Source of the DNA: Anthoceros angustus
Taxonomy: Eukaryota; Plantae; Anthocerotophyta
Assembly: GCA_010909165.1 (NCBI GenBank)
Contig: MU008175.1
Span: 1,045,370-1,109,369, forward strand
Direction: 5' to 3'
DNA length: 64,000 bases
This document shows, one piece after another, positions 9,392 through 21,099 of this stretch. The notes under the pieces are model-generated. The model was not told the DNA's origin. It ran no database searches and saw nothing but the letters and a program-made list of their open reading frames with translations. The position numbers and the translations under genes were made by a program. The first letter of the stretch is position 1, and each line of letters starts with the position of its first letter.

Positions 9392-12300
9392 ATGAGGAAG
9401 GGTTGTCTGGGGGAGTATGTGGTTTTGGGTGGGAGCGTCTGCAGAAGGCTATCATCGTTGCAGCTCGCGGTGGAGCGTCACATACCCTCAACGAGCCCTG
9501 TGGAGCCCAATGCAGGGCAGGCTCGGTGGGAACAGTTTCTGGCAGATCGTTCACACGGGTGGGAGGACCGGTGGAAGAACAAGGTAATTCACGTCAGTAA
9601 TTTTGAGTCTTCCAATTGCCTCTGTGGTCATGGGTGATGTGCTTATGACATCATTGCAGACAACTCAGGCCTACTGTTATTTGAAGAACGACGAGGATGT
9701 GTGTGAAGGTAGACCTGACATCTACTGTGGGCCTAAGGATGAGGATGTTGGGCGGTGCAGACCACAGCCAGTCAGGTGAGCTGGCTTCTCTTTTTTGCTT
9801 GTCCTTCTACTTTGATGAGACTGGGCGGCATCGGGTGTCCAGACACGTTATACTGCACCTGCGTGGAATGGCACACCCAAGCAGTTGCTGTTTTGACAGT
9901 CCTCTCAACCTTGAAGGGTGTCAGACTATTCGGCTAATTCCGAGATTGGAACTTGGAGAAAATTCGTTCGAGAGGGTCAGCTCGTCAAGGCTATTGCAGC
10001 ATTGGACTTCCTGGTCGAGAGAGGTTCTTACGTGTCAGCATCGTTGTTCCACCGACTACTCAGACGATGCACTGCACGTAAGGATCTGGTTCTTGGAAGG
10101 GGTGTTCACGATCTTGCTTTTAAGAGTGGGTATGGGTCTTCTGCATTCTTGGCCAATCACATCATCCGCATGTACGCATCCCTTGGAAAGCTGCTGGAGG
10201 CAACACAGGCATTTGCAGAAGTAGCTGTACCAGACACGTTCATGTGGGTCTCCCTTATTTCAGCACACACTGAACACGGTCGCTCCAGGCAGGCTCTACA
10301 CCTGTACAGACAGATGCGAGAAGCAAGTGTTAATGCAGATAACCACGTGTTTATGGCAGTCCTCAATGCATGCGCTAGTGCTGCAGATTTGGCATCGGGC
10401 AAGCAGGTCCATGCAGATATTCTGCGGTCTGCAATTGAGCCCGACGTATCTGTTGGCAACTGCTTGGTGGACATGTATGCAAAGTGTGGCAGCCTGGAGG
10501 ATGCTCACAGGGTCTTTGACAGTTTGTCCTCCAAAGATGTGGTGACTTGGACTACTATGATCTCCGCATTTTGTCAGCAGGGGCTTGCACAAGAATCCCT
10601 CAATCTTTACGCAACCATGCAAGAGGGCATCATTCCAGCTAATCGTGTTACATTTGTGTGCCTACTAAAAGCATGTGCCGGAATAAGAGCTTTACATGAG
10701 GGTAGACGGCTTCATTTTGAGATTATAGACAGAGGTCTAGAAGTTGATCCACTCGTGGGCAGCAGCCTGGTTGATATGTATGCAAAATGTGGCAGCCTGG
10801 ATTATGCTCGTACAGTCTTTGACAGGTTGCCGACGAAAGATGTTGTCACATGGACTACTATGATTGTCGGATATGTGGAGCACGGCTTTGGTCGAGAGTC
10901 GCTTATCCTATATGCTGTCATGCAGCAAGAGGGCGTCATCACAGCTGACTGTGTTATGTATTGCTGCCTTTTGAAAGCATGTGCTAGCATTGGGGCCCTA
11001 CATGAGGGTAAGAAGATTCATGCCCAAATGCAGGAAAGTGGTCTGGACGTTGACGTGGTTATGGGTAATTGCCTGGTTGATATGTATGCAAAATGTGGCA
11101 GCTTGGAGGATGCTCGCATAGTGTTTGACAGTTTGACCACAAAAGATGTGGTTTTATGGACCACTATGATTTCCACTTACTGTCAGCATGGACTTGGTGT
11201 AGAATCTCTCCATCTTTATAGAAGGATGCAGCAGGAAGGCATCTGCCCTGCAGATAACATCACATTTTCCTGCCTTTTAAAAGCGTGTGCTAGCATTGGA
11301 GCTTTACATGAGGGAATGGAGCTTCATTCCCAGATAGAGAAACGAGGTCTGGAAGCTGACATTGTCATTGGCAACGCTCTTGTGGATATGTATGGGAAAT
11401 GTGGGAGCATTGGCAAGGCTCGCCAAGTATTTGATAATCTACCTTCAAAAGATGTTGTGACGTGGAATTCAATGCTTGTGGGATACGCTGAGCACGGGTT
11501 TGCCCAAGAATCCCTCTCTCTCCATGCAAGTATGCAGCAAGAGGGCATCACTTGTGCTGACAGTGTTACTTTTATGTCTCTCCTGAAAGCATGTGGCAGC
11601 ATTGGAGCTCTACATCAAGGGAAGAATATTCATTCTCAGATTCAGGTTCAAGGGCTGGGAATAGATCCGGCTGTTGGCAGCAGCTTGGTGGACATGTATG
11701 CAAACTGTGGGAGCTTAGAGGATGCCCGCACAGTATTTGATCAATTGCCTCGAAAAGATGTGGTGACCTGGACTGCCATGATTGCTGGGTACGCTCAGCA
11801 AGGGCTTGGTCATGAATCACTTTATCTGTATGCAGAAATGCAGAAGGAGGGTATAACTTCAGCTGATCATGTGACATTTGCCGCCCTTTTGAAGGCTTGT
11901 GCTAGTGTTGCAGCACTAAACAAGGGAAAGCAGCTTCATTCCCACATCCAGGACCTAGGATTACTGCCTAATCTGGTTATAGGCAACTGCCTGGTGGACA
12001 TGTATGTAAAATGTGGGAGCATAGAGGAGGCTCGTCAAGCATTTGACAGATTGCACACAAGAGATGTGGTGACATGGACTTCACTAATATCTGGTTATGC
12101 TCAGTGTGGTTTTGGTGAAGTAGCCCTTACTCTATATGCAAAGATGCAAGAGGAGGGTCTAATTCCAGCAGACCACGTTACATTTGCCTGCCTTTTGAAA
12201 GCATGTGCTAGCAGTGGGGCATTGCACCAGGGAAGGCAGCTTCATTCCCAAATTCAGGACCTAGGATGGCAAGCTGATGTCGTCCTCAGCAATGGCCTGC

Positions 12301-13310
12301 TAGACATGTATGCCAAATGTGGCAGCATCGTAGAGGCTCGAAAAGTGTTTGACAGTATGCCCACAAGAGATGTGATAACATGGACTTCCATGATTGCTTG
12401 CTATGCTGAGCAGGGGTTTGGTCAGGATGCCCTCATGCTATATTCAGGAATGGAACAGGAGAGTGTTTCTCCGGATCATATTACGTTTGTCTGCCTTCTA
12501 AAAGCGTGTGCCAGTCTTGGAGAGTTGAATCAGGGTAAGAAGCTTCATACTCAGATAAGGAACCAAGGACTAGAGGCTGATGTGCTTGTTGGTTTGGTGG
12601 ACATGTACGCAAAATGTGGGAGTTTAGAGGACTCTTGCGATGTGTTCAACAGATTGCCAACAAGGGATGTGGTGTCTTGGAATGCCATGATTGCTGCCTA
12701 CGCCCAGCATGGGTCTGGTCGGGAAGCTGTGCAATGTTACGAGAAAATGCAGCTGGCGGGTGTTAAGCCTGACAAAGTAACGTTTCTTTCTCTTCTCTGT
12801 GCATGCAGCCATGCTGGACTAGTGGACGAAGGTGTTGGGTTCTTCGAGTCCATGTGCCGGGACTACCACATAGCTCCAGAGATGGAGCATTATGTCAGCA
12901 TTGTAGACCTCTATGGTCGTGCAGGATGCTTTTCAAGGGTGGAACATTTAATTTCAACAATACCAACTCAGCCAGACCTTGCAATCTGGTTGTCTTTATT
13001 GGGGGCCTGCCGGAAGTATGGAAATGTAGTGCTGGGAGAGCAGGCCTTTCATTGTGCAGTGCATCTGGAGCCCAAGCACGCTGCATCTTATGTATTGATG
13101 TCACAAATTTATGCTGAGGCAGGGCTTGTAGACCTTGCCCTGGAAGTGCACGTATTACGACAGAAGGAAGGTGCATTGAAGATGCCTGGTGAAACCTGGA
13201 TCAAGCATGGGCAGGAAGTGCACAGATTCGTAGTAGGAGACACCCTGCACCCAGAGCATAAGCAAGTCTATGATCTGTTGGAGGAGTTAAACTTGATATT
13301 GAAGGGTTGA
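9392..13310 (+). CDS. PLS-class PPR protein, E+ type (PPR-B); proposed exons 9392-9583, 9660-9775, 9917-13310
   Basis: 1130-aa ORF with 8 S motifs, E1/E2, KMPGETWI PG box and an E+ tail. Leader MRKGCLG...CRRLSS has donors AAG|GTAATT and GTCAG|GTGAG, which join the main ORF in frame via the AG at 9915-9916. Confidence 0.92.
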
Positions 13311-13647
13311 GGGCGTTCCGTACTAAAACAGCACATGGAGTTTGTGTGCACAAGGTGGTTTTCCATCTGTCGCAAATTTTAAAATGCCATCAAGCTAGTG
13401 GGAAGGACTGCTTGGACGAAGATCATTTTGTCATATGGGTCAAATATTGCCGCTGAACTGATGGATGCATGCAGTCGAACCACGAGCAGTAATAAGTTGA
13501 TGATAGTAGCTGGTAAATGTGTTCCGCTGATAGATTGCTTGTAGCCCCATGTGCAGCCCGGCACATTCATCACGCATTATGAAGAGAGTGAGCAGTAATA
13601 TGGGTGCCCTTCTGGATGACCATAGCCTGGTTGGTGGCGGGCTAGTA

Positions 13648-16600
13648 TCAAAACTTGCAGGGATTCCCTGTGAGCGTCCTGACCGAGGGCACAAGTGGTA
13701 CGTGCATTCTGGCCTCAAGCACATCAGGGTGCAGTAACAAGAGACCTCCAGACCAACGAGCAGTATTGTGGGGCGTTGGAGGCAGCCTGAATTGTGCTAC
13801 ACGTTCATCTTGTATGACCCCAGCATATGTTAGAAATATTGCCTGTAGAGCCTTCGCACCTGTGAGTTCACTGTACCAAGATGCAATTTTAGGATATAAT
13901 GCTTGGACCAATGTCTCTCCTCCAGCTTCCCATATTCGTTTGTGCACAGCGACAGTGGGCCACTCGAAGACTCCCTCTGAGACTTGGACAACTCCTACAC
14001 ATTCACTAGGCTTCCCTTTGCAGTAATGAAGAAAGACTTTGACCTCCACATCCCCTGAAATTGGCTGCGTTTTCATCCGACATCCTGGTTTCTTCCGACA
14101 AGTATAATCATATGGCCTTGCGGCAGGAGCTGTTGCAGGTCTGCCTGAAGCATATATAGGTGGAGGTGAGCCATCCAACGTGCCATGCAGGTAACCAGGA
14201 GGCGATGGAGGTCTGGAACACGGCGGTGATGGTGATTGGCCTCTGGAACATGGCGGGGATGGTGATTGGTCTCTGGTTGGCGGTGATGGTGATTGGTCTC
14301 TGGAACATGGCGGTGATGATGATTTGTCTCTGGAATATGGCGGTGATGATGATTTGTCTCTGGAACACGGCGGTGATGGTGATTTGTCTTTCCTGTTGTG
14401 CAGATCCTGCTGGGGCGGTTGTGATGCACCTTTGGCTCCAGGAGAACAAGATGTGGGTTTGTATGCACTAGGAGGGGCAGCAGCAGAAGGATCTGTGGGT
14501 TTAGCAGCAGAAGGGCAAGGAGTGGGTTTGCCACCCTGCGTGCTATGCAGGTGACAAGGGGGCGATGGATGTCTGGAATAGGGCGGTGATGATGATTTGT
14601 CTTCCTTATTGTGCAGCTCGCAAGGGCGCGATGGTGATTTACTGTTGGCAGCAGGAGGCCAAGGTGTGTGTTTGCCTGCAGTGGGAGGGGCAGCAGACGA
14701 AGGACATGCGGGTTTGGCAGCAGAAGGGCAAGGAGTGGATTTGGCTGTAGGAGGAGGGGAGGAAGATTTGGCAGCAGGAACAGGTGTAGGTTTCGCAGAA
14801 TTCACAGACGGGGTCACTGCAGCTGCAGCTGTTGCAGGTCGAGTCAATTGATTGCTGGGTGGAGTGTTACAGAAATCTGGCTGTCCTGTAGATGTCACAC
14901 AACGGTGCCACATATTGCTGTTTGGATCTACAAAGCGGGAATGCTTGATAACAATTGGAATTGGCAGGAGGCAGTAGTGAGTATTGACTAAACCCACAGT
15001 CACGTTGGAGTACCCGGCAAATGCAGCATGAACCTGCAGAACACCCATACAAACATGATTTCTGTTGGACCTCTCATGAAGAACAGCATAGCCTGACGTC
15101 GTCTTTGACCGTATCAAACGCAGCAACATTTGTCTTACTGCATTCTGCCCCAACACACTGCAGAAAATGTGGTCCGCCGAGTTACAAGGCCTAGCTCGAA
15201 TCATGTACGTGGGATCTATGTACTTCACGTCTGCTGACATTTTTATTTTACTGAAATAGGCTTTCACCTATAAGCAGAGTGTCAATGCAGTAACGAGCTT
15301 GCGAAACAATTTCAGTTGCAACCGGGTTCAGAAGCACAAATCCGGTCTTTTGGATCTAACTTCTTGCTTCTCAAACTGATCGATCGCTAACCTGGCTGTA
15401 GAACCATTTGCCAACATCTGCTAAGACTGTGTTTCCTGACGCATCGACAGCCCCCGTCTTCTCAAGAAGATCCTGCAGTGTTAGGCGCTAGCGTGACAAT
15501 TGGCTGCATATCGACTGACTCAACTTGCATTTGTTTTCGTGTGAACAGATGCGCAAGAACCATTCAAACCGCAAGAGCACCTGTCCGGCACCTTCTGCAA
15601 CCACAACAACACAAATGCCATTCCTTTCCAGTCTTTTTTTCATGAAAGCTAGCACGCCGTTGTTGCCGTCCATCACAAATGGTACCTGCAGGATCACGAG
15701 AGCGAAAATGGTAGAAACTCAGACCGTTTGCAGCAGGGGACACGAATACTATCAAGATCTTACCTCAGGAATGAGAACCACGTCAACTTGGCCACTTGCC
15801 AGTGTAGCATGCATGGCTATGAAACCACTGTGCCTTCCCATGAGTTTTACAATGCCTACACCATTGAAAGCGCTAGAGGCCTAACAAAACGCAACTGAGC
15901 ATAAATCAACATCGCAGTGGACATAGTTCTGCACTGGATTAACAGTACAACAAGTTGCATCCCTGCACTCCACTAATCAAGGCAATAGGGACAGCACCTC
16001 CACATAAGCAGCATTTATGGCACGTTGAGCCTCCTCAACAGCTGTGTCGAAACCAAAGCTTTTATCAACCAGAAGAAAATCATTATCAATGGTCTTGGGC
16101 ACACCTACAACAGCTAGCTTCAACTTGCGTGCCCAGACCTAGCACATTAGCAGTTGGTCTTAAAATTTTAACATGGGTCATTAACCTGACCGAAGCTTCT
16201 GCTCTTGACGTGCGGCGACTGAAGTTTTTAGCACTTACTTCCTTGAAGATAGCATTTGCCCCGGCATGTGAACCATTACCACCGATGACGAAAAGCATGT
16301 TAATCTTCCATGCCTACAGTAAAACTAAAGACAATTGAAAATTTCCAATCAGGAAATGCTAGGCAACTCCACCAGAACCAAGGCTCTCGCACACCTCTAA
16401 TTTATCGACTAACTCGGAAATTTTGGGGCCACCACGAGTTACACCCAAAAAGCTGCCCCCTTGCATGTTGATCCGTTGCACTACCTTTCTGTTCAGCTGC
16501 ATATGTTACAGCTTAAAACTTGTACAATGCCTTGGGCAAGTGATCACAATCAGAACTTCCGCAAAGGAATCACAAGCATGCAAGCAAGGATGAGCTTACA

Positions 16601-17580
16601 GCAATGGGTGGTAGCTTGGGGTCGGAGAATCCACGGAACCCATACTGAATACCCAGGATTTGACTAACACCATAGATCTCCAACGTGTACACAATCTGCA
16701 TCACAGACATCTGATGCATCACATAACATTCCTTCAGCAGCTTCAGACTAGGGAACAAGTGTGGTGAATGTCACTGAGTCTACCTGACGAATGACATCAT
16801 TAAGACCGGGACACAGCCCACCAGAGGTAAGGATGGCAGCCTTCACCTGGCAAAGAGCACTGTTAGACTTGAAAGGAGACTTGAAAGGATGAGAAAATGT
16901 GACGGAAGGACAAAACCATGGAGAACAGAATACAGTATGCACATACGCACTTCGTCTGGGCGAAAATATATCCATGCCCGTGGGCCTGCACGTCGAGCCC
17001 TGGAGCAAGATGAAGCAGGAATTACGAAAGGAAAGCAACCAGAGAAGAATAATCCTCATGTCAGCACGTGGAACGCAGCACACGAACCACATGGGCCTGA
17101 ATTGCCACTCCCCATTCTCATCATTCTCAATGCCAGCAGAAGTTGGGTGGCCATAGTGCACAACCTAGAAGACAGGTTGATGCGGTTGTCAGAACATTTG
17201 TGCAAGCACCGCACCTTGTTGCATTTCTGCGAAACGGGCCCTCAGCTATACAGCCGTCACCTTGACTGTACCTTAACAAGAACACGATCCTCATCATGCA
17301 CAAACAGTCTCCCCATGTCATGCCTATCTGGTCTTGGTGGGCTGGACACCCCATCTGGCAAAGGTGCTCTGGTACATCATGAAAGAAACTGTGAGAAACA
17401 AATGCATGCCGCAATCTGCACTTCATGCAAATGAAGCCTGGATGTATACCCGCTTTTAGTCCTATACGTTGATTCAAGCCGTCCCAGGCCAAGATAGTCC
17501 CCCAAGTGAGGCAACTCGAACGCGTCATCGGACTTTTTAGGCAACGACAGCTCTTCCTCCAGCGCACTCTTTCTCCCCAT
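13648..17580 (-). CDS. PFK: ATP-dependent 6-phosphofructokinase, PFK5-like (group B), multi-exon, with a ~407-aa C-terminal extension; start codon uncertain (17580 or further upstream)
   Basis: Exons encode [23 protein letters not shown]|[21 protein letters not shown]|[48 protein letters not shown] and [15 protein letters not shown], collinear with plant PFK5. Confidence 0.93.
14212..14388. repeat. Six-copy 30-bp coding tandem repeat (one unit 27 bp) encoding S-P/S-SPP-C/Y-SR-D/G-K/Q units in the PFK extension
   Basis: Unit tctggaac(a/c)tggcggtgatg(a/g)tgatt(t/g)gtc read directly at 14212, 14242, 14272, 14299, 14329 and 14359. Confidence 0.95.
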
Positions 17581-18084
17581 CTCCAGTGCTCGAGAAGCAA
17601 GCTACACAACCACTCAGCGGAAACAGGGGTTCCTGTCCTGCGCATGCTCATCTCTGCCCAACGCAAGAAGGATCCAGTCCGGCTGCCGCTGCTGCCCTCT
17701 GAAGGCAATCCTTTGAGATTGGCTGCTCCCCCAAAGTCTGCTTTTGTCCGTCATCATATCACGACAAAATCTCCATCCAGATTTCCCAGGGTCCGACCAT
17801 CCCCATTGTGGCCGAACCACAGAAAATTGCATCCTGCACACAACTCCGTGGCCACTAAACCCACCAGCGATTGCCTCCAGTTTGATACAGACAAGCATCT
17901 CACTGATCGACCACACCGCACCGGCGAGACGCGCGCATTGCAGCAGCCGGCGTGGGTTCAGCTAACTCCGGGCTCACTTTCCTCTAACTTCCAAGCCACC
18001 TGAAAAATCTCGGTCGTCTCCCACCTGCCTGGCAGAAATGGTGGAGCATGGCACGGTGACGGAAAGGCCGTGGTGCTTCTGAGG

Positions 18085-21000
18085 ATGATCAGAGGTGGCA
18101 GTTTGGGTGGCCATTTGGCTGTGTTGCTCAAAGTGCCCATGAAATCCGGTACGGAGGAATGCTGCAGGCATGCATCATGGTGGCAATGCCAGTTCAGCAG
18201 CTCCTCCGTTGAGGTAATCCATGTCCTTGCTGTGGGTCCATGAAAGAGACGCGGTTGACGTTGGTTGGGCTTTGAATTCCGTGTTCAAGTGCAGGGCAAG
18301 CACCGCGGCCAGCAAGGACGAGTGCAGGGATTTGAAGCAGTTGCAGAGATTGGAAGCTGCTGGGGGAAGACGTGGGAGGAGGGAGTACTTCGTAAGGATG
18401 TTGAAGCGTTGGGCCTTGTGGTGGACCGACCATCTCCAGTCCCTGTATCTCTTATCCATCGCTTGCTCAGGAGGTGCATGGCAGAGGGGAGTTTGGTTCT
18501 CGGGAGGCGAGTTCATGCTCTGGCTCTTCGATGTGGGCTAGAGTGCAACATGTTCTTGGCCAACCACTTCATCCGCATGTATGCTTCCCATAAGAGGCTG
18601 GAGGAAGCCACACAGGTGTTCTCCAAACTGGCTGCCCCAAGCACATATTTGTGGTCCTGCATCATATCGGCACATGCTGATCATGGGGAGGTTGCTCATG
18701 CCATGGGGCTGTATGAAGGGATGACTACAAGGCCAGATGATCATACCTTTGTGGCGATACTCAAAGCATGTGCCAGGGCAGGAGATCTGGCATCGGGCAG
18801 GAAGGTCCATGCAGATATTTTGGGGGCTGCAGTTGAGCCAAATGTTTTTGTTGGCAACTGCCTGGTGGATATGTATGTCAAGTGTGGCAGGCTGGAGGAT
18901 GCTCGCAAGGTTTTTGACAGTCTGAGTACCAAAGACGTGGTAACTTGGACCACTATGGTTGGCGGGTATGCTCAGCATGGCCTTGGTCAGGAAGCTCTCT
19001 CTCTTTATGCAGATATGCAGCGGGAGGGCGTCTGTGCAGCCAATCATATTACGTTTGCTTGCCTTTTGAAGGCATGTGCCAGCATCTTAGATTTGCCTGA
19101 GGGCAAGCGGCTTCATTCCGAGTTGCAGGAAAGGGGTCTGGAGACTAATCTGCTTCTTGGCAACTGCCTGGTGGACATGTATGCAAAATGTGGCAGCCTA
19201 GAGGATGCTTGCAAGGTATTTGATAATCTACCTGTGCGGGATGTGGTGACATGGAATGCCCTCATAGCCGGATATGTTCAGCATGGCCGTGGTCAAGAGA
19301 GTCTCACTCTGTTTGCCAAAATGCAACATGCAGGTATTCATGCCGATCAGGTGACATTTGCGTCCCTTTTAAAGGCATGTGCCAGTATTCGAGCTTTACG
19401 TGAGGGGAAGAGTCTGCATCGCTTGATCAAGCAGAGAGGACACGAGGATGATGTGGTTATTGGCAACTGTCTGGTGGACATGTATGCAAGGTGCGGAAGC
19501 TTAGAGGAAGCTCGCAAAGTATTTGACAGATTCCGGACACGAAATGTGATAACGTGGACAGTCATGATAGCAGCATATGCTGACCAGGGTTTTGGTCAGG
19601 AATGTCTCTGTCTTTATGCAAGTATGCAGCAGGAAGGCATCGCTCGGGGTGATCCCGTTACATTTTCATGTCTTTTGAAAGCCTGTGGCTGCATAGCAGA
19701 TTTGCATCGGGGAAGACAAGTTCATGCCGAAATCAAGAGCCATGGCCTGGACTCCGATGTGATCATTGGCAACTGCCTGGTAGAAATGTATGCAAAATGT
19801 GGCAGCTTGTTGGAAGCTCGTAAGGTGTTTGATAGAATGCCCACAAGAGATGTTGTGACATGGACTGTGATGATATCCAGGTATGCTGAGCATGGGCTTG
19901 GTCAGGAATCTCTTGCACTCTATGCAAGTATGCAGCAGGAAGGCATCACTCCAGTAGACAAAATTGCATTGGCCTGCCTTTTGACTGCGTGTGCTGGTTC
20001 AGGTGATTTACAGCAAGGGAAACAGCTTCATTCCCAGATTCAGGAGCAAGGCTTGGAAGCTGATACGCATGTTGGCAACTGCCTGGTGGACATGTACGCA
20101 AAGTGTGGAAGCTTAGAGGATGCCCGTCGAGTGTTCAACAGTATGCCCATCAGAGATGTTGTCACATGGACTGCCCTGATTGCCGCGTACTCTGAGCAGG
20201 GGCTCTTCAAGGAAGCCCTCATTCTGTACGCAAGGATGCAACAAGAGGGCATGACTCCACCTGATAGCGTCACTTTTGCATGCCTTCTAAAAGCCTGTGC
20301 AAGCCTTGGACGTCTACATCAGGGAAAGGAGCTCCACGCTCAGATCCAGAGCACGCAGGGACTGGAAGACGACGAACTTATTGGCAACTGCCTTGTGGAC
20401 ATGTATGCGAAATGCGGCAGTTTAGAGGAATCTTGTAGGATATTCAGCAGATTGCCAGCAAGGGATGTGGTGACATGGAATGCCATGATCGGTGGCTATG
20501 CACAGCACGGGCACGGCCAAGAGGCAGTGCAATGCTATGAGGGAATGTGTTTTGCGGGTATCAAGCCAGATGCAGTCACATTCCTTTCGCTCCTCACAGC
20601 ATGCAGTCGTGCTGGCCTAGCTGACAAAGGTGCTGAGTACTTCCAGTCCATGAGCACGGCCCATGGCCTAACCCCACAAATAGAGCACTACGTCTGCATG
20701 GTCGATCTGTTCGGGCGTGCAGGAATGTTCGCAAAAGTAGAAAAGTTGCTCATGACAATGCCCATGGAGCCGGATCTGGCTCTGTGGCTGTGTTTGCTGG
20801 CTGCATGCCGGCGACACGGCAAAGTTGTGCTGGGAGAAAGTGCATTCCGCTGTGCAGTGCACGAACATCCTAAGCATTCTGCCGCGTATGTGTTGATGTC
20901 TCACATCTATGCTGACGCCGGTTTTCTGCACCACGCCGCGGCAGTGCAAGCCTTGAGAAAACAGGCAGGTGCGTGGAAGGGGCCCGGCTACAGCTGGATT

Positions 21001-21099
21001 GAGCTTGAGACGGAAGTCCACAGCTTCTTGACAGGGGATCGTTCTCCAACCTCGGCATTGGCTGGCCTGTCCACACCCTTACCTGTGACTCGATCGTGA
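18085..21099 (+). CDS. PLS-class PPR protein with E1-E2 and a truncated E+ (PPR-C); proposed exons 18085-18213, 18295-21099
   Basis: 944-aa ORF with 6 S motifs. Leader MIRGGSLGG...CCRH...FSSSSVE ends at GAG|GTAATC and joins CAG|GGCAAG in phase 0 across an 81-nt intron. After VHSFLTGD the sequence diverges from the paralogues. Confidence 0.92.

Follow-up and report, generated by a model that had tools for sequence, protein, structure and literature searches.

In the window (the whole 64,000-nucleotide stretch of Anthoceros angustus DNA analysed here), the minus strand carries a gene for a PFK5-like ATP-PFK whose last exon does not close at the end motif STGQPDF. The same exon stays open for 407 more codons (13651–14871, minus strand) and then ends in TGA, at exactly the coordinates given in a preliminary description of this DNA. 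Is this extension part of the enzyme and, if so, what does it add? PFK is one of the main control points of glycolysis. To our knowledge, plant PFKs are poorly understood biochemically, and we found no published description of this C-terminal extension in the literature. We conclude, with a probability of roughly 0.8, that the gene encodes a hornwort-restricted, PFK5-like ATP-PFK whose catalytic body is translated on into a long spacer and then into a constrained orphan domain, and we infer that the spacer would serve as a tether and the domain as a binding unit. The features of the gene are listed in Table 1.

Table 1. Features of the PFK gene and its tail, in window coordinates
Feature	Position	Strand	Description
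PFK gene, whole	13648..17580	−	14 exons, 882 aa; PFK body residues 1–475, tail 476–882; ATG 17580
Intron	15034–15138	−	105 nt, GT-AG, in frame, stop-free; excision restores conserved PFK motif
PFK part of last exon	14872..15033	−	54 aa, ending STGQPDF
Spacer	14056..14871	−	272 aa, basic, P/S/A/K/C-rich; 17 Ser-Pro, 13 Cys
Tandem repeats in spacer	14212–14743	−	30-nt unit x6 (decapeptide SPSPPCSRD[KQ]S type), 57-nt unit, 213-nt unit x1.8 (Tandem Repeats Finder)
Conserved spacer end (RPPSPP ... [CG][HY]LH ... RPATAP)	14125..14214	−	Collinear in window and P0001/L001
Conserved C-terminal domain	13651..14055	−	135–150 aa, ordinary composition; predicted ~90-aa beta3-alpha-beta2 core plus ~45 residues
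TGA stop	13648..13650	−	Common to window and relative L001

Gene model and catalytic body

The gene model was derived from contigs of four public runs aligned to positions 13300–18200, with spliced RNA-derived contigs in three of the four. Joints in the spliced contigs defined 11 introns, each with GT..AG ends after cut offsets. Two further consensus GT-AG introns, 15034–15138 and 16139–16238 (minus strand), were inferred from the reading frame and from orthologues, and were placed because the frame and the conserved PFK motifs are recovered only with them. The spliced translation of 882 aa contains no stops. Since intron 15034–15138 is in frame and stop-free, the raw minus-strand ORF (13648..15267, 539 aa) reads through it; after its removal, the last exon starts at 15033. 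The extension lies in the PFK frame, as had been proposed, but the raw 539-aa ORF includes an intron. The counterpart of this intron is closed by stops in L001, a 12.4-kb Logan contig from another sample that encodes protein P0001, the sole distant orthologue compared.

Compared with plant and algal PFKs that contain PF00365, the PFK part of the last exon shows 76–89% identity. The PFK body as a whole is 67–73% identical to moss, liverwort, fern and lycophyte orthologues, with all motifs common to the aligned orthologues intact, and the 882-aa product aligns over the full length of eight PF00365 orthologues with its catalytic and substrate-binding motifs uninterrupted. In a phylogenetic tree, the gene falls within the clade of land-plant PFK orthologues. 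As judged from these alignments, the catalytic body is intact and canonical. P0001 aligns through its first 44 residues with positions 398–441 of the 445-position PFK model PRK06830 (NCBIfam), indicating that the PFK family ends in the QPDF region and that the remainder is extra.

A plastid role had also been suggested for the enzyme. The start codon lies 24 aa before the conserved LPHLGDYL motif in the window and 32 aa before it in L001, and in each gene an in-frame stop closely precedes it; no long Ser/Thr-rich, transit-peptide-like leader is visible at either N-terminus as modelled, with an unseen 5' exon being possible. A Cys pair (CxxxxC) upstream of RAGPR in the Klebsormidium PFK, which we take to be the thioredoxin switch of Arabidopsis PFK5, is absent from the window, from L001 and from all aligned land-plant orthologues covering the region (the window reads IENDENGEW, as compared with AEC-LNDDC in Klebsormidium). 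Given the start positions, the upstream stops and the missing Cys pair, we saw no support in the modelled sequence for a plastid enzyme under thioredoxin control.

PFK is flanked by two PPR genes of the PLS type, both long, free of introns and on the plus strand (9918–13310 and 18265–21099; 1130 and 944 aa). The first of these converges on PFK, with 338 nt between the two stop codons. On the other side, contigs of two closely related species break or diverge at 17840–17860 (loose ends at 17849 and 17857–17858), ~270 nt upstream of the PFK ATG, which suggests that part of the 5' UTR or promoter carries an indel or has been replaced.

Contigs of three RNA-type runs, from three species, span positions 13300–15265, the whole tail included, and no splice joint was found in that interval in any of the three runs. 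One contig that is spliced at intron 15268–15391 continues through 14871 to 14582. TTCT|GTAACA near 14870 had been put forward as a splice donor that might remove the extension; besides the missing joint, this donor is not kept in L001, which reads TTCTTCAGTCC. Introns 15034–15138 and 16139–16238 were seen spliced in no contig of the three RNA-type runs, although upstream introns were spliced; the last three or four PFK introns look retained in runs X1 and X3, and one contig joins PFK and the convergent PPR gene. These contigs are unstranded graph paths, in which PFK mRNA may be mixed with its pre-mRNA and with antisense transcripts that read through from the PPR gene. Because the same contigs retain consensus introns and reach the PPR gene, we treat the jointless tail contigs as weak evidence, compatible with the long last exon. 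The apparently retained 3' introns could be ones that are removed slowly, or they could stem from transcripts of the convergent PPR gene that read through in antisense.

The contigs also bear on the idea that the tail is a separate, mostly PFK-free protein, made from a transcript that starts in the last intron or exon, with translation beginning at the Met of NSNMWHRC (~17 PFK residues, the spacer and the domain) and the full-length PFK mRNA ending earlier. The k-mer depth of run X2 is ~52–59 over 13300–15265, as compared with ~5–15 over upstream exons, a difference that such a transcript would produce, as it would the apparently unspliced last introns in X1 and X3; moreover, the window species and L001 both keep this Met, 17 residues ahead of QPDF. 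However, contig depth is unreliable as a measure of expression, the X2 pattern could equally come from 3' bias or from PPR-gene transcripts reading through in antisense, and in X1 the depth of the tail (16–23) equals that of the exons (14–20). The feature that is conserved is the continuity of the frame with PFK. The L001 spacer contains no Met at all, so translation cannot start inside it. We consider a separate tail protein distinctly unlikely, and favour an extension that is translated together with the PFK body.

Constraint on the frame past STGQPDF

The whole orthologous gene is present in L001. Its PFK part is 89% identical to that of the window, and the two PFKs are sisters with 100/99 support in a tree of twelve plant and algal orthologues. 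The layout past STGQPDF is also the same: a 256-aa spacer rich in P, S, T, A, K and C is followed by the domain, in the same exon and frame, with the total tail in the range of 391–407 aa for L001 and the window. The preliminary description had divided the extension into a ~265-aa P/S/A/C-rich tether and a ~142-aa domain of ordinary composition, a division that holds at 272 aa and 135–150 aa.

The spacers of the window and L001 cannot be aligned (pN 0.53, pS 0.76), and each contains 13 Cys. The C-terminal domains of the window and P0001 are 66–69% identical over 135–150 aa. For the domain, pN was 0.184 and pS 0.672 (Nei-Gojobori, window versus L001), corresponding to an omega of ~0.12, and nucleotide identity at codon positions 1, 2 and 3 was 76, 84 and 49%, respectively. 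Synonymous sites between the two sequences are saturated. Past the common TGA, identity over 250 nt drops to 47%, which is the random level (51% in a shuffled control). The dN/dS comparison proposed earlier for the tail reveals a constrained domain.

Could the extension nevertheless be an untranslated 3' UTR, or a chance ORF held open by Pro-rich repeats? The repeats are indeed poor in stops, and the other frames contain ORFs of 100–150 aa in the repeat region. However, the frame continuous with PFK has no stops over the tail in either the window or L001, as compared with 7–14 in the other two sense frames; over the spacer of the window alone, the PFK frame has 0 and the other two have 4 and 7. 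None of 5000 shuffles left the tail frame open, and two genomes keep it open despite saturation at their synonymous sites. The omega of the domain, its codon-position pattern and the collapse of similarity exactly at the common stop likewise contradict an untranslated or chance origin. L001 could in principle be a recent transfer or a contaminant of the same lineage, but the saturated pS and the difference in GC content (43% in L001 versus 50%) disfavour this. We consider the 3' UTR or chance-ORF explanation effectively refuted. Because the relative keeps the layout, the domain is constrained, similarity collapses at the stop and the PFK frame is open, the comparison supports the extension being a conserved coding part of the PFK reading frame rather than 3' UTR.

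We also considered an antisense chance ORF (13655..14026, plus strand) as a source of the conservation. It was ruled out: every antisense frame of L001 contains 14–39 stops.

Two close relatives, ~95% identical to the window in DNA, lend weaker support. Where indels are listed or otherwise accounted for, the tail has one of 27 nt (at 14258) and one of 3 nt (at 14277), both in frame, and the adjacent UTR has indels of 11 and 14 nt. Judged from these listed indels, with not every substitution seen, the close relatives appear to retain the tail frame. Among the 16 domain substitutions listed, 7 are synonymous and 9 are not, for a rough omega of ~0.4 based on small numbers.

The Cys residues of HYC and SEC (13995–14024, minus strand), which lie in the first strands of the domain, are replaced by Ser in the two close relatives (at 14001 and 14022), and the corresponding positions in L001 are Ser and Ala. 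Neither cysteine, therefore, is a conserved structural or redox residue.

The spacer consists of 24% P, 18% S, 11% A, 7% K, 7% T and 5% C, with a pI of 9.7, and matched no Pfam family; from its composition, it is probably disordered. Its last part is the exception to the unalignable sequence: 5–6-mers common to both species occur there with matched spacing (24 versus 26 residues).

Family and fold of the C-terminal domain

We searched with the domain, the spacer and the whole ORF against Pfam (E<=10), NCBIfam and PDB sequences, and found no family; a match to PPE-PPW (E 0.05) was dismissed as chance. In an exhaustive HMMER search of 1.84 billion representative proteins with a two-sequence profile, P0001 was the only real match. 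It was also the sole match in a word-index protein search with the domain at length limits of 296–943 aa, and the same search at 82–262 aa gave no match. A scan of metagenome contigs with the domain alignment yielded no relative, and tblastn detected no second copy of the domain within the window. The domain is thus an orphan at the level of sequence, with no detectable relatives beyond its own orthologue.

Three HMMER matches were rejected. P0002 and P0004 are tandem-repeat translations that contain the word W.TVA....W.AGGE many times over, and P0003 is a bacterial protein of long tandem repeats. The P0002 and P0004 matches reach an E-value of 4.6e-21 via the recurring W.TVA....W.AGGE.....LY; summed repeat matches can look significant.

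Structure prediction, which had been proposed for the last residues of the protein, yielded a low-confidence beta3-alpha-beta2 arrangement and no known family. Two AF2 models agree on a beta-beta-beta-alpha-beta-beta core of ~90 residues, with pLDDT values of 47 (two-sequence alignment) and 57.5 (single sequence). The last ~45 residues of the domain are its most conserved part, yet they are unstructured in the AF2 models. Foldseek searches of the PDB with the models returned nothing at E<=0.001. In a wide VIA-align search, the best Z-scores were 5.1–5.5, under the noise level of the tool (typical best Z 7–8), and the best rows of an ESM Atlas feature search had ~120/256 features in common, which is uninformative.

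The spacing of motifs in the domain had been read as recalling a ubiquitin-like or MUB fold. Pfam returned nothing at E<=10 for such a fold, including no ubiquitin or Rad60-SLD signal, and no ubiquitin-like chain was present among the top 50 Foldseek or VIA-align matches listed. The predicted topology also differs, albeit in low-confidence models. Nor do the proteins end in the CaaX prenylation box of MUB proteins: the window sequence ends in ...NPCKF and P0001 in ...NTCKC, placing the Cys at -3 rather than -4. On these searches and low-confidence models, the ubiquitin-like or MUB proposal is not supported.

A weak RNase-H-like theme recurs in the fold searches, which we treat as a lead only, given by predicted models. 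It raises the possibility that the C-terminal domain is an exapted piece of a transposon, namely a degenerate RNase-H-like part of a hAT transposase (DUF659, PF04937). An ESM Atlas shape search returned several plant DUF659/zf-BED clusters at TM 0.48–0.50 over 109–111 residues, and VIA-align matched the Hermes transposase, retroviral integrase cores and RT connection domains at Z 3.5–4.9. All of these scores, however, lie under the stated noise levels of the tools (for Z, the typical best of 7–8), and the models being compared are of low confidence. A hAT origin also has to contend with the silence of Pfam even at E<=10, and with the lack of another copy of the domain in the window. In the RNase H fold, moreover, beta4 and beta5 are separated by a helix (beta4-alpha-beta5), unlike the hairpin that beta4 and beta5 form in the models. 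We give a transposon origin little credence, and continue to regard the domain as an orphan.

Possible role, origin and comparison with known PFKs

The two parts of the tail evolve in a manner that would fit a tether and a binding unit. The spacer keeps its length (272 versus 256 aa), its basic composition and its Cys count while its sequence and repeat number drift, as a flexible tether might. The C-terminal module, which is constrained and is directly preceded by the conserved RPPSPP...[CG][HY]LH...RPATAP segment, would be the binding unit, and could dock PFK to a partner or to a cell structure. Alternatively, it may fold back on the PFK oligomer and regulate the enzyme. The Ser-Pro sites and cysteines of the tail are candidate regulatory sites. 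Both the tethering and the docking or regulatory function are proposed from sequence features of the tail.

Using the PFK portion of the last exon as query, we retrieved thirty-odd orthologues. PFK5-type proteins had been expected to end one or two residues past QPDF, an expectation that fails for the non-seed-plant orthologues retrieved: these have tails of 8–140 aa past QPDF, mostly P/S-rich (52–76 aa in Marchantia, 127–140 aa in Sphagnum and 33–58 aa in ferns and lycophytes). The hornwort C-terminal domain is absent from all of the other PFK orthologues retrieved. Hence, the fusion that had been sought in relatives is found in L001/P0001, but not in the moss, liverwort, fern or lycophyte orthologues retrieved. 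A short P/S-rich tail was already in place here in other non-seed plants, so that the most probable history is one in which such a tail expanded, and a new terminal domain was gained, in the common ancestor of the window species and L001.

The fern and lycophyte tails (P0007, P0008, P0012–P0015, P0017 and P0026) have the motif [YF]PLS[QK][RK]RAS[SN] in common, which looks like a basophilic-kinase or 14-3-3-type site.

A more specific scenario is that the domain is a hornwort invention, which arose de novo or by capture at the tip of a disordered tail as this expanded, and that it places PFK at a cellular site or assembly; this could be a structure of starch or of the pyrenoid periphery, a membrane (via the many cysteines) or a condensate. 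We consider this scenario unlikely in so specific a form. If true, it would imply a spatial layer of carbon-flux control in hornworts that is not seen in other land plants. Any role in localisation would be of interest to the carbon-concentrating-mechanism field, a link that is hypothetical here. The reading that we prefer, a PFK translated on into a spacer and a constrained orphan domain, is broader. It describes a PFK variant in which a ~260-aa spacer and an orphan domain have been kept across a deep split in the lineage, with the domain under purifying selection, and it offers a testable case of a core metabolic enzyme gaining a non-catalytic module, in which the tail expands first and a domain is then born or captured. 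For annotation, it means that hornwort gene models should retain the long last exon and not cut it back as UTR.

Among known systems, the closest are the land-plant PFK5-like ATP-PFKs, including the Physcomitrium "PFK 5, chloroplastic", Marchantia Mp_1g27810 and Selaginella SELMODRAFT_187341, which share the catalytic body, the end motif STGQPDF and short P/S-rich tails. Their tails are 8–140 aa long and have no terminal domain, whereas the hornwort form has a tail of 391–407 aa that includes a domain of 135–150 aa. The PLS[QK][RK]RAS motif sets apart the fern and lycophyte orthologues, being absent from hornwort, moss and liverwort tails. Ubiquitin-like and MUB proteins resemble the hornwort tail in that a small alpha/beta module lies C-terminally and a Cys is found close to the end of the chain, but have a beta-grasp fold and a CaaX box, as compared with the predicted beta3-alpha-beta2 arrangement and the Cys at -3 (CKF, CKC) of the hornwort domain.

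Animal PFKs have C-terminal tails that are an example of disordered regulatory or targeting tails on metabolic enzymes. Green-algal PFKs are reported at specific sub-organellar sites, with the chloroplast PFKs of Ulva and Chlamydomonas at the pyrenoid periphery (bioRxiv 10.64898/2026.07.16.738900). The animal tails and the pyrenoid-periphery PFKs have no sequence relationship to the hornwort tail, and the hornwort PFK has no evident transit peptide and is known here from sequence. What they would share with it, by analogy only, is an appended non-catalytic segment that sets the position or activity of the enzyme.
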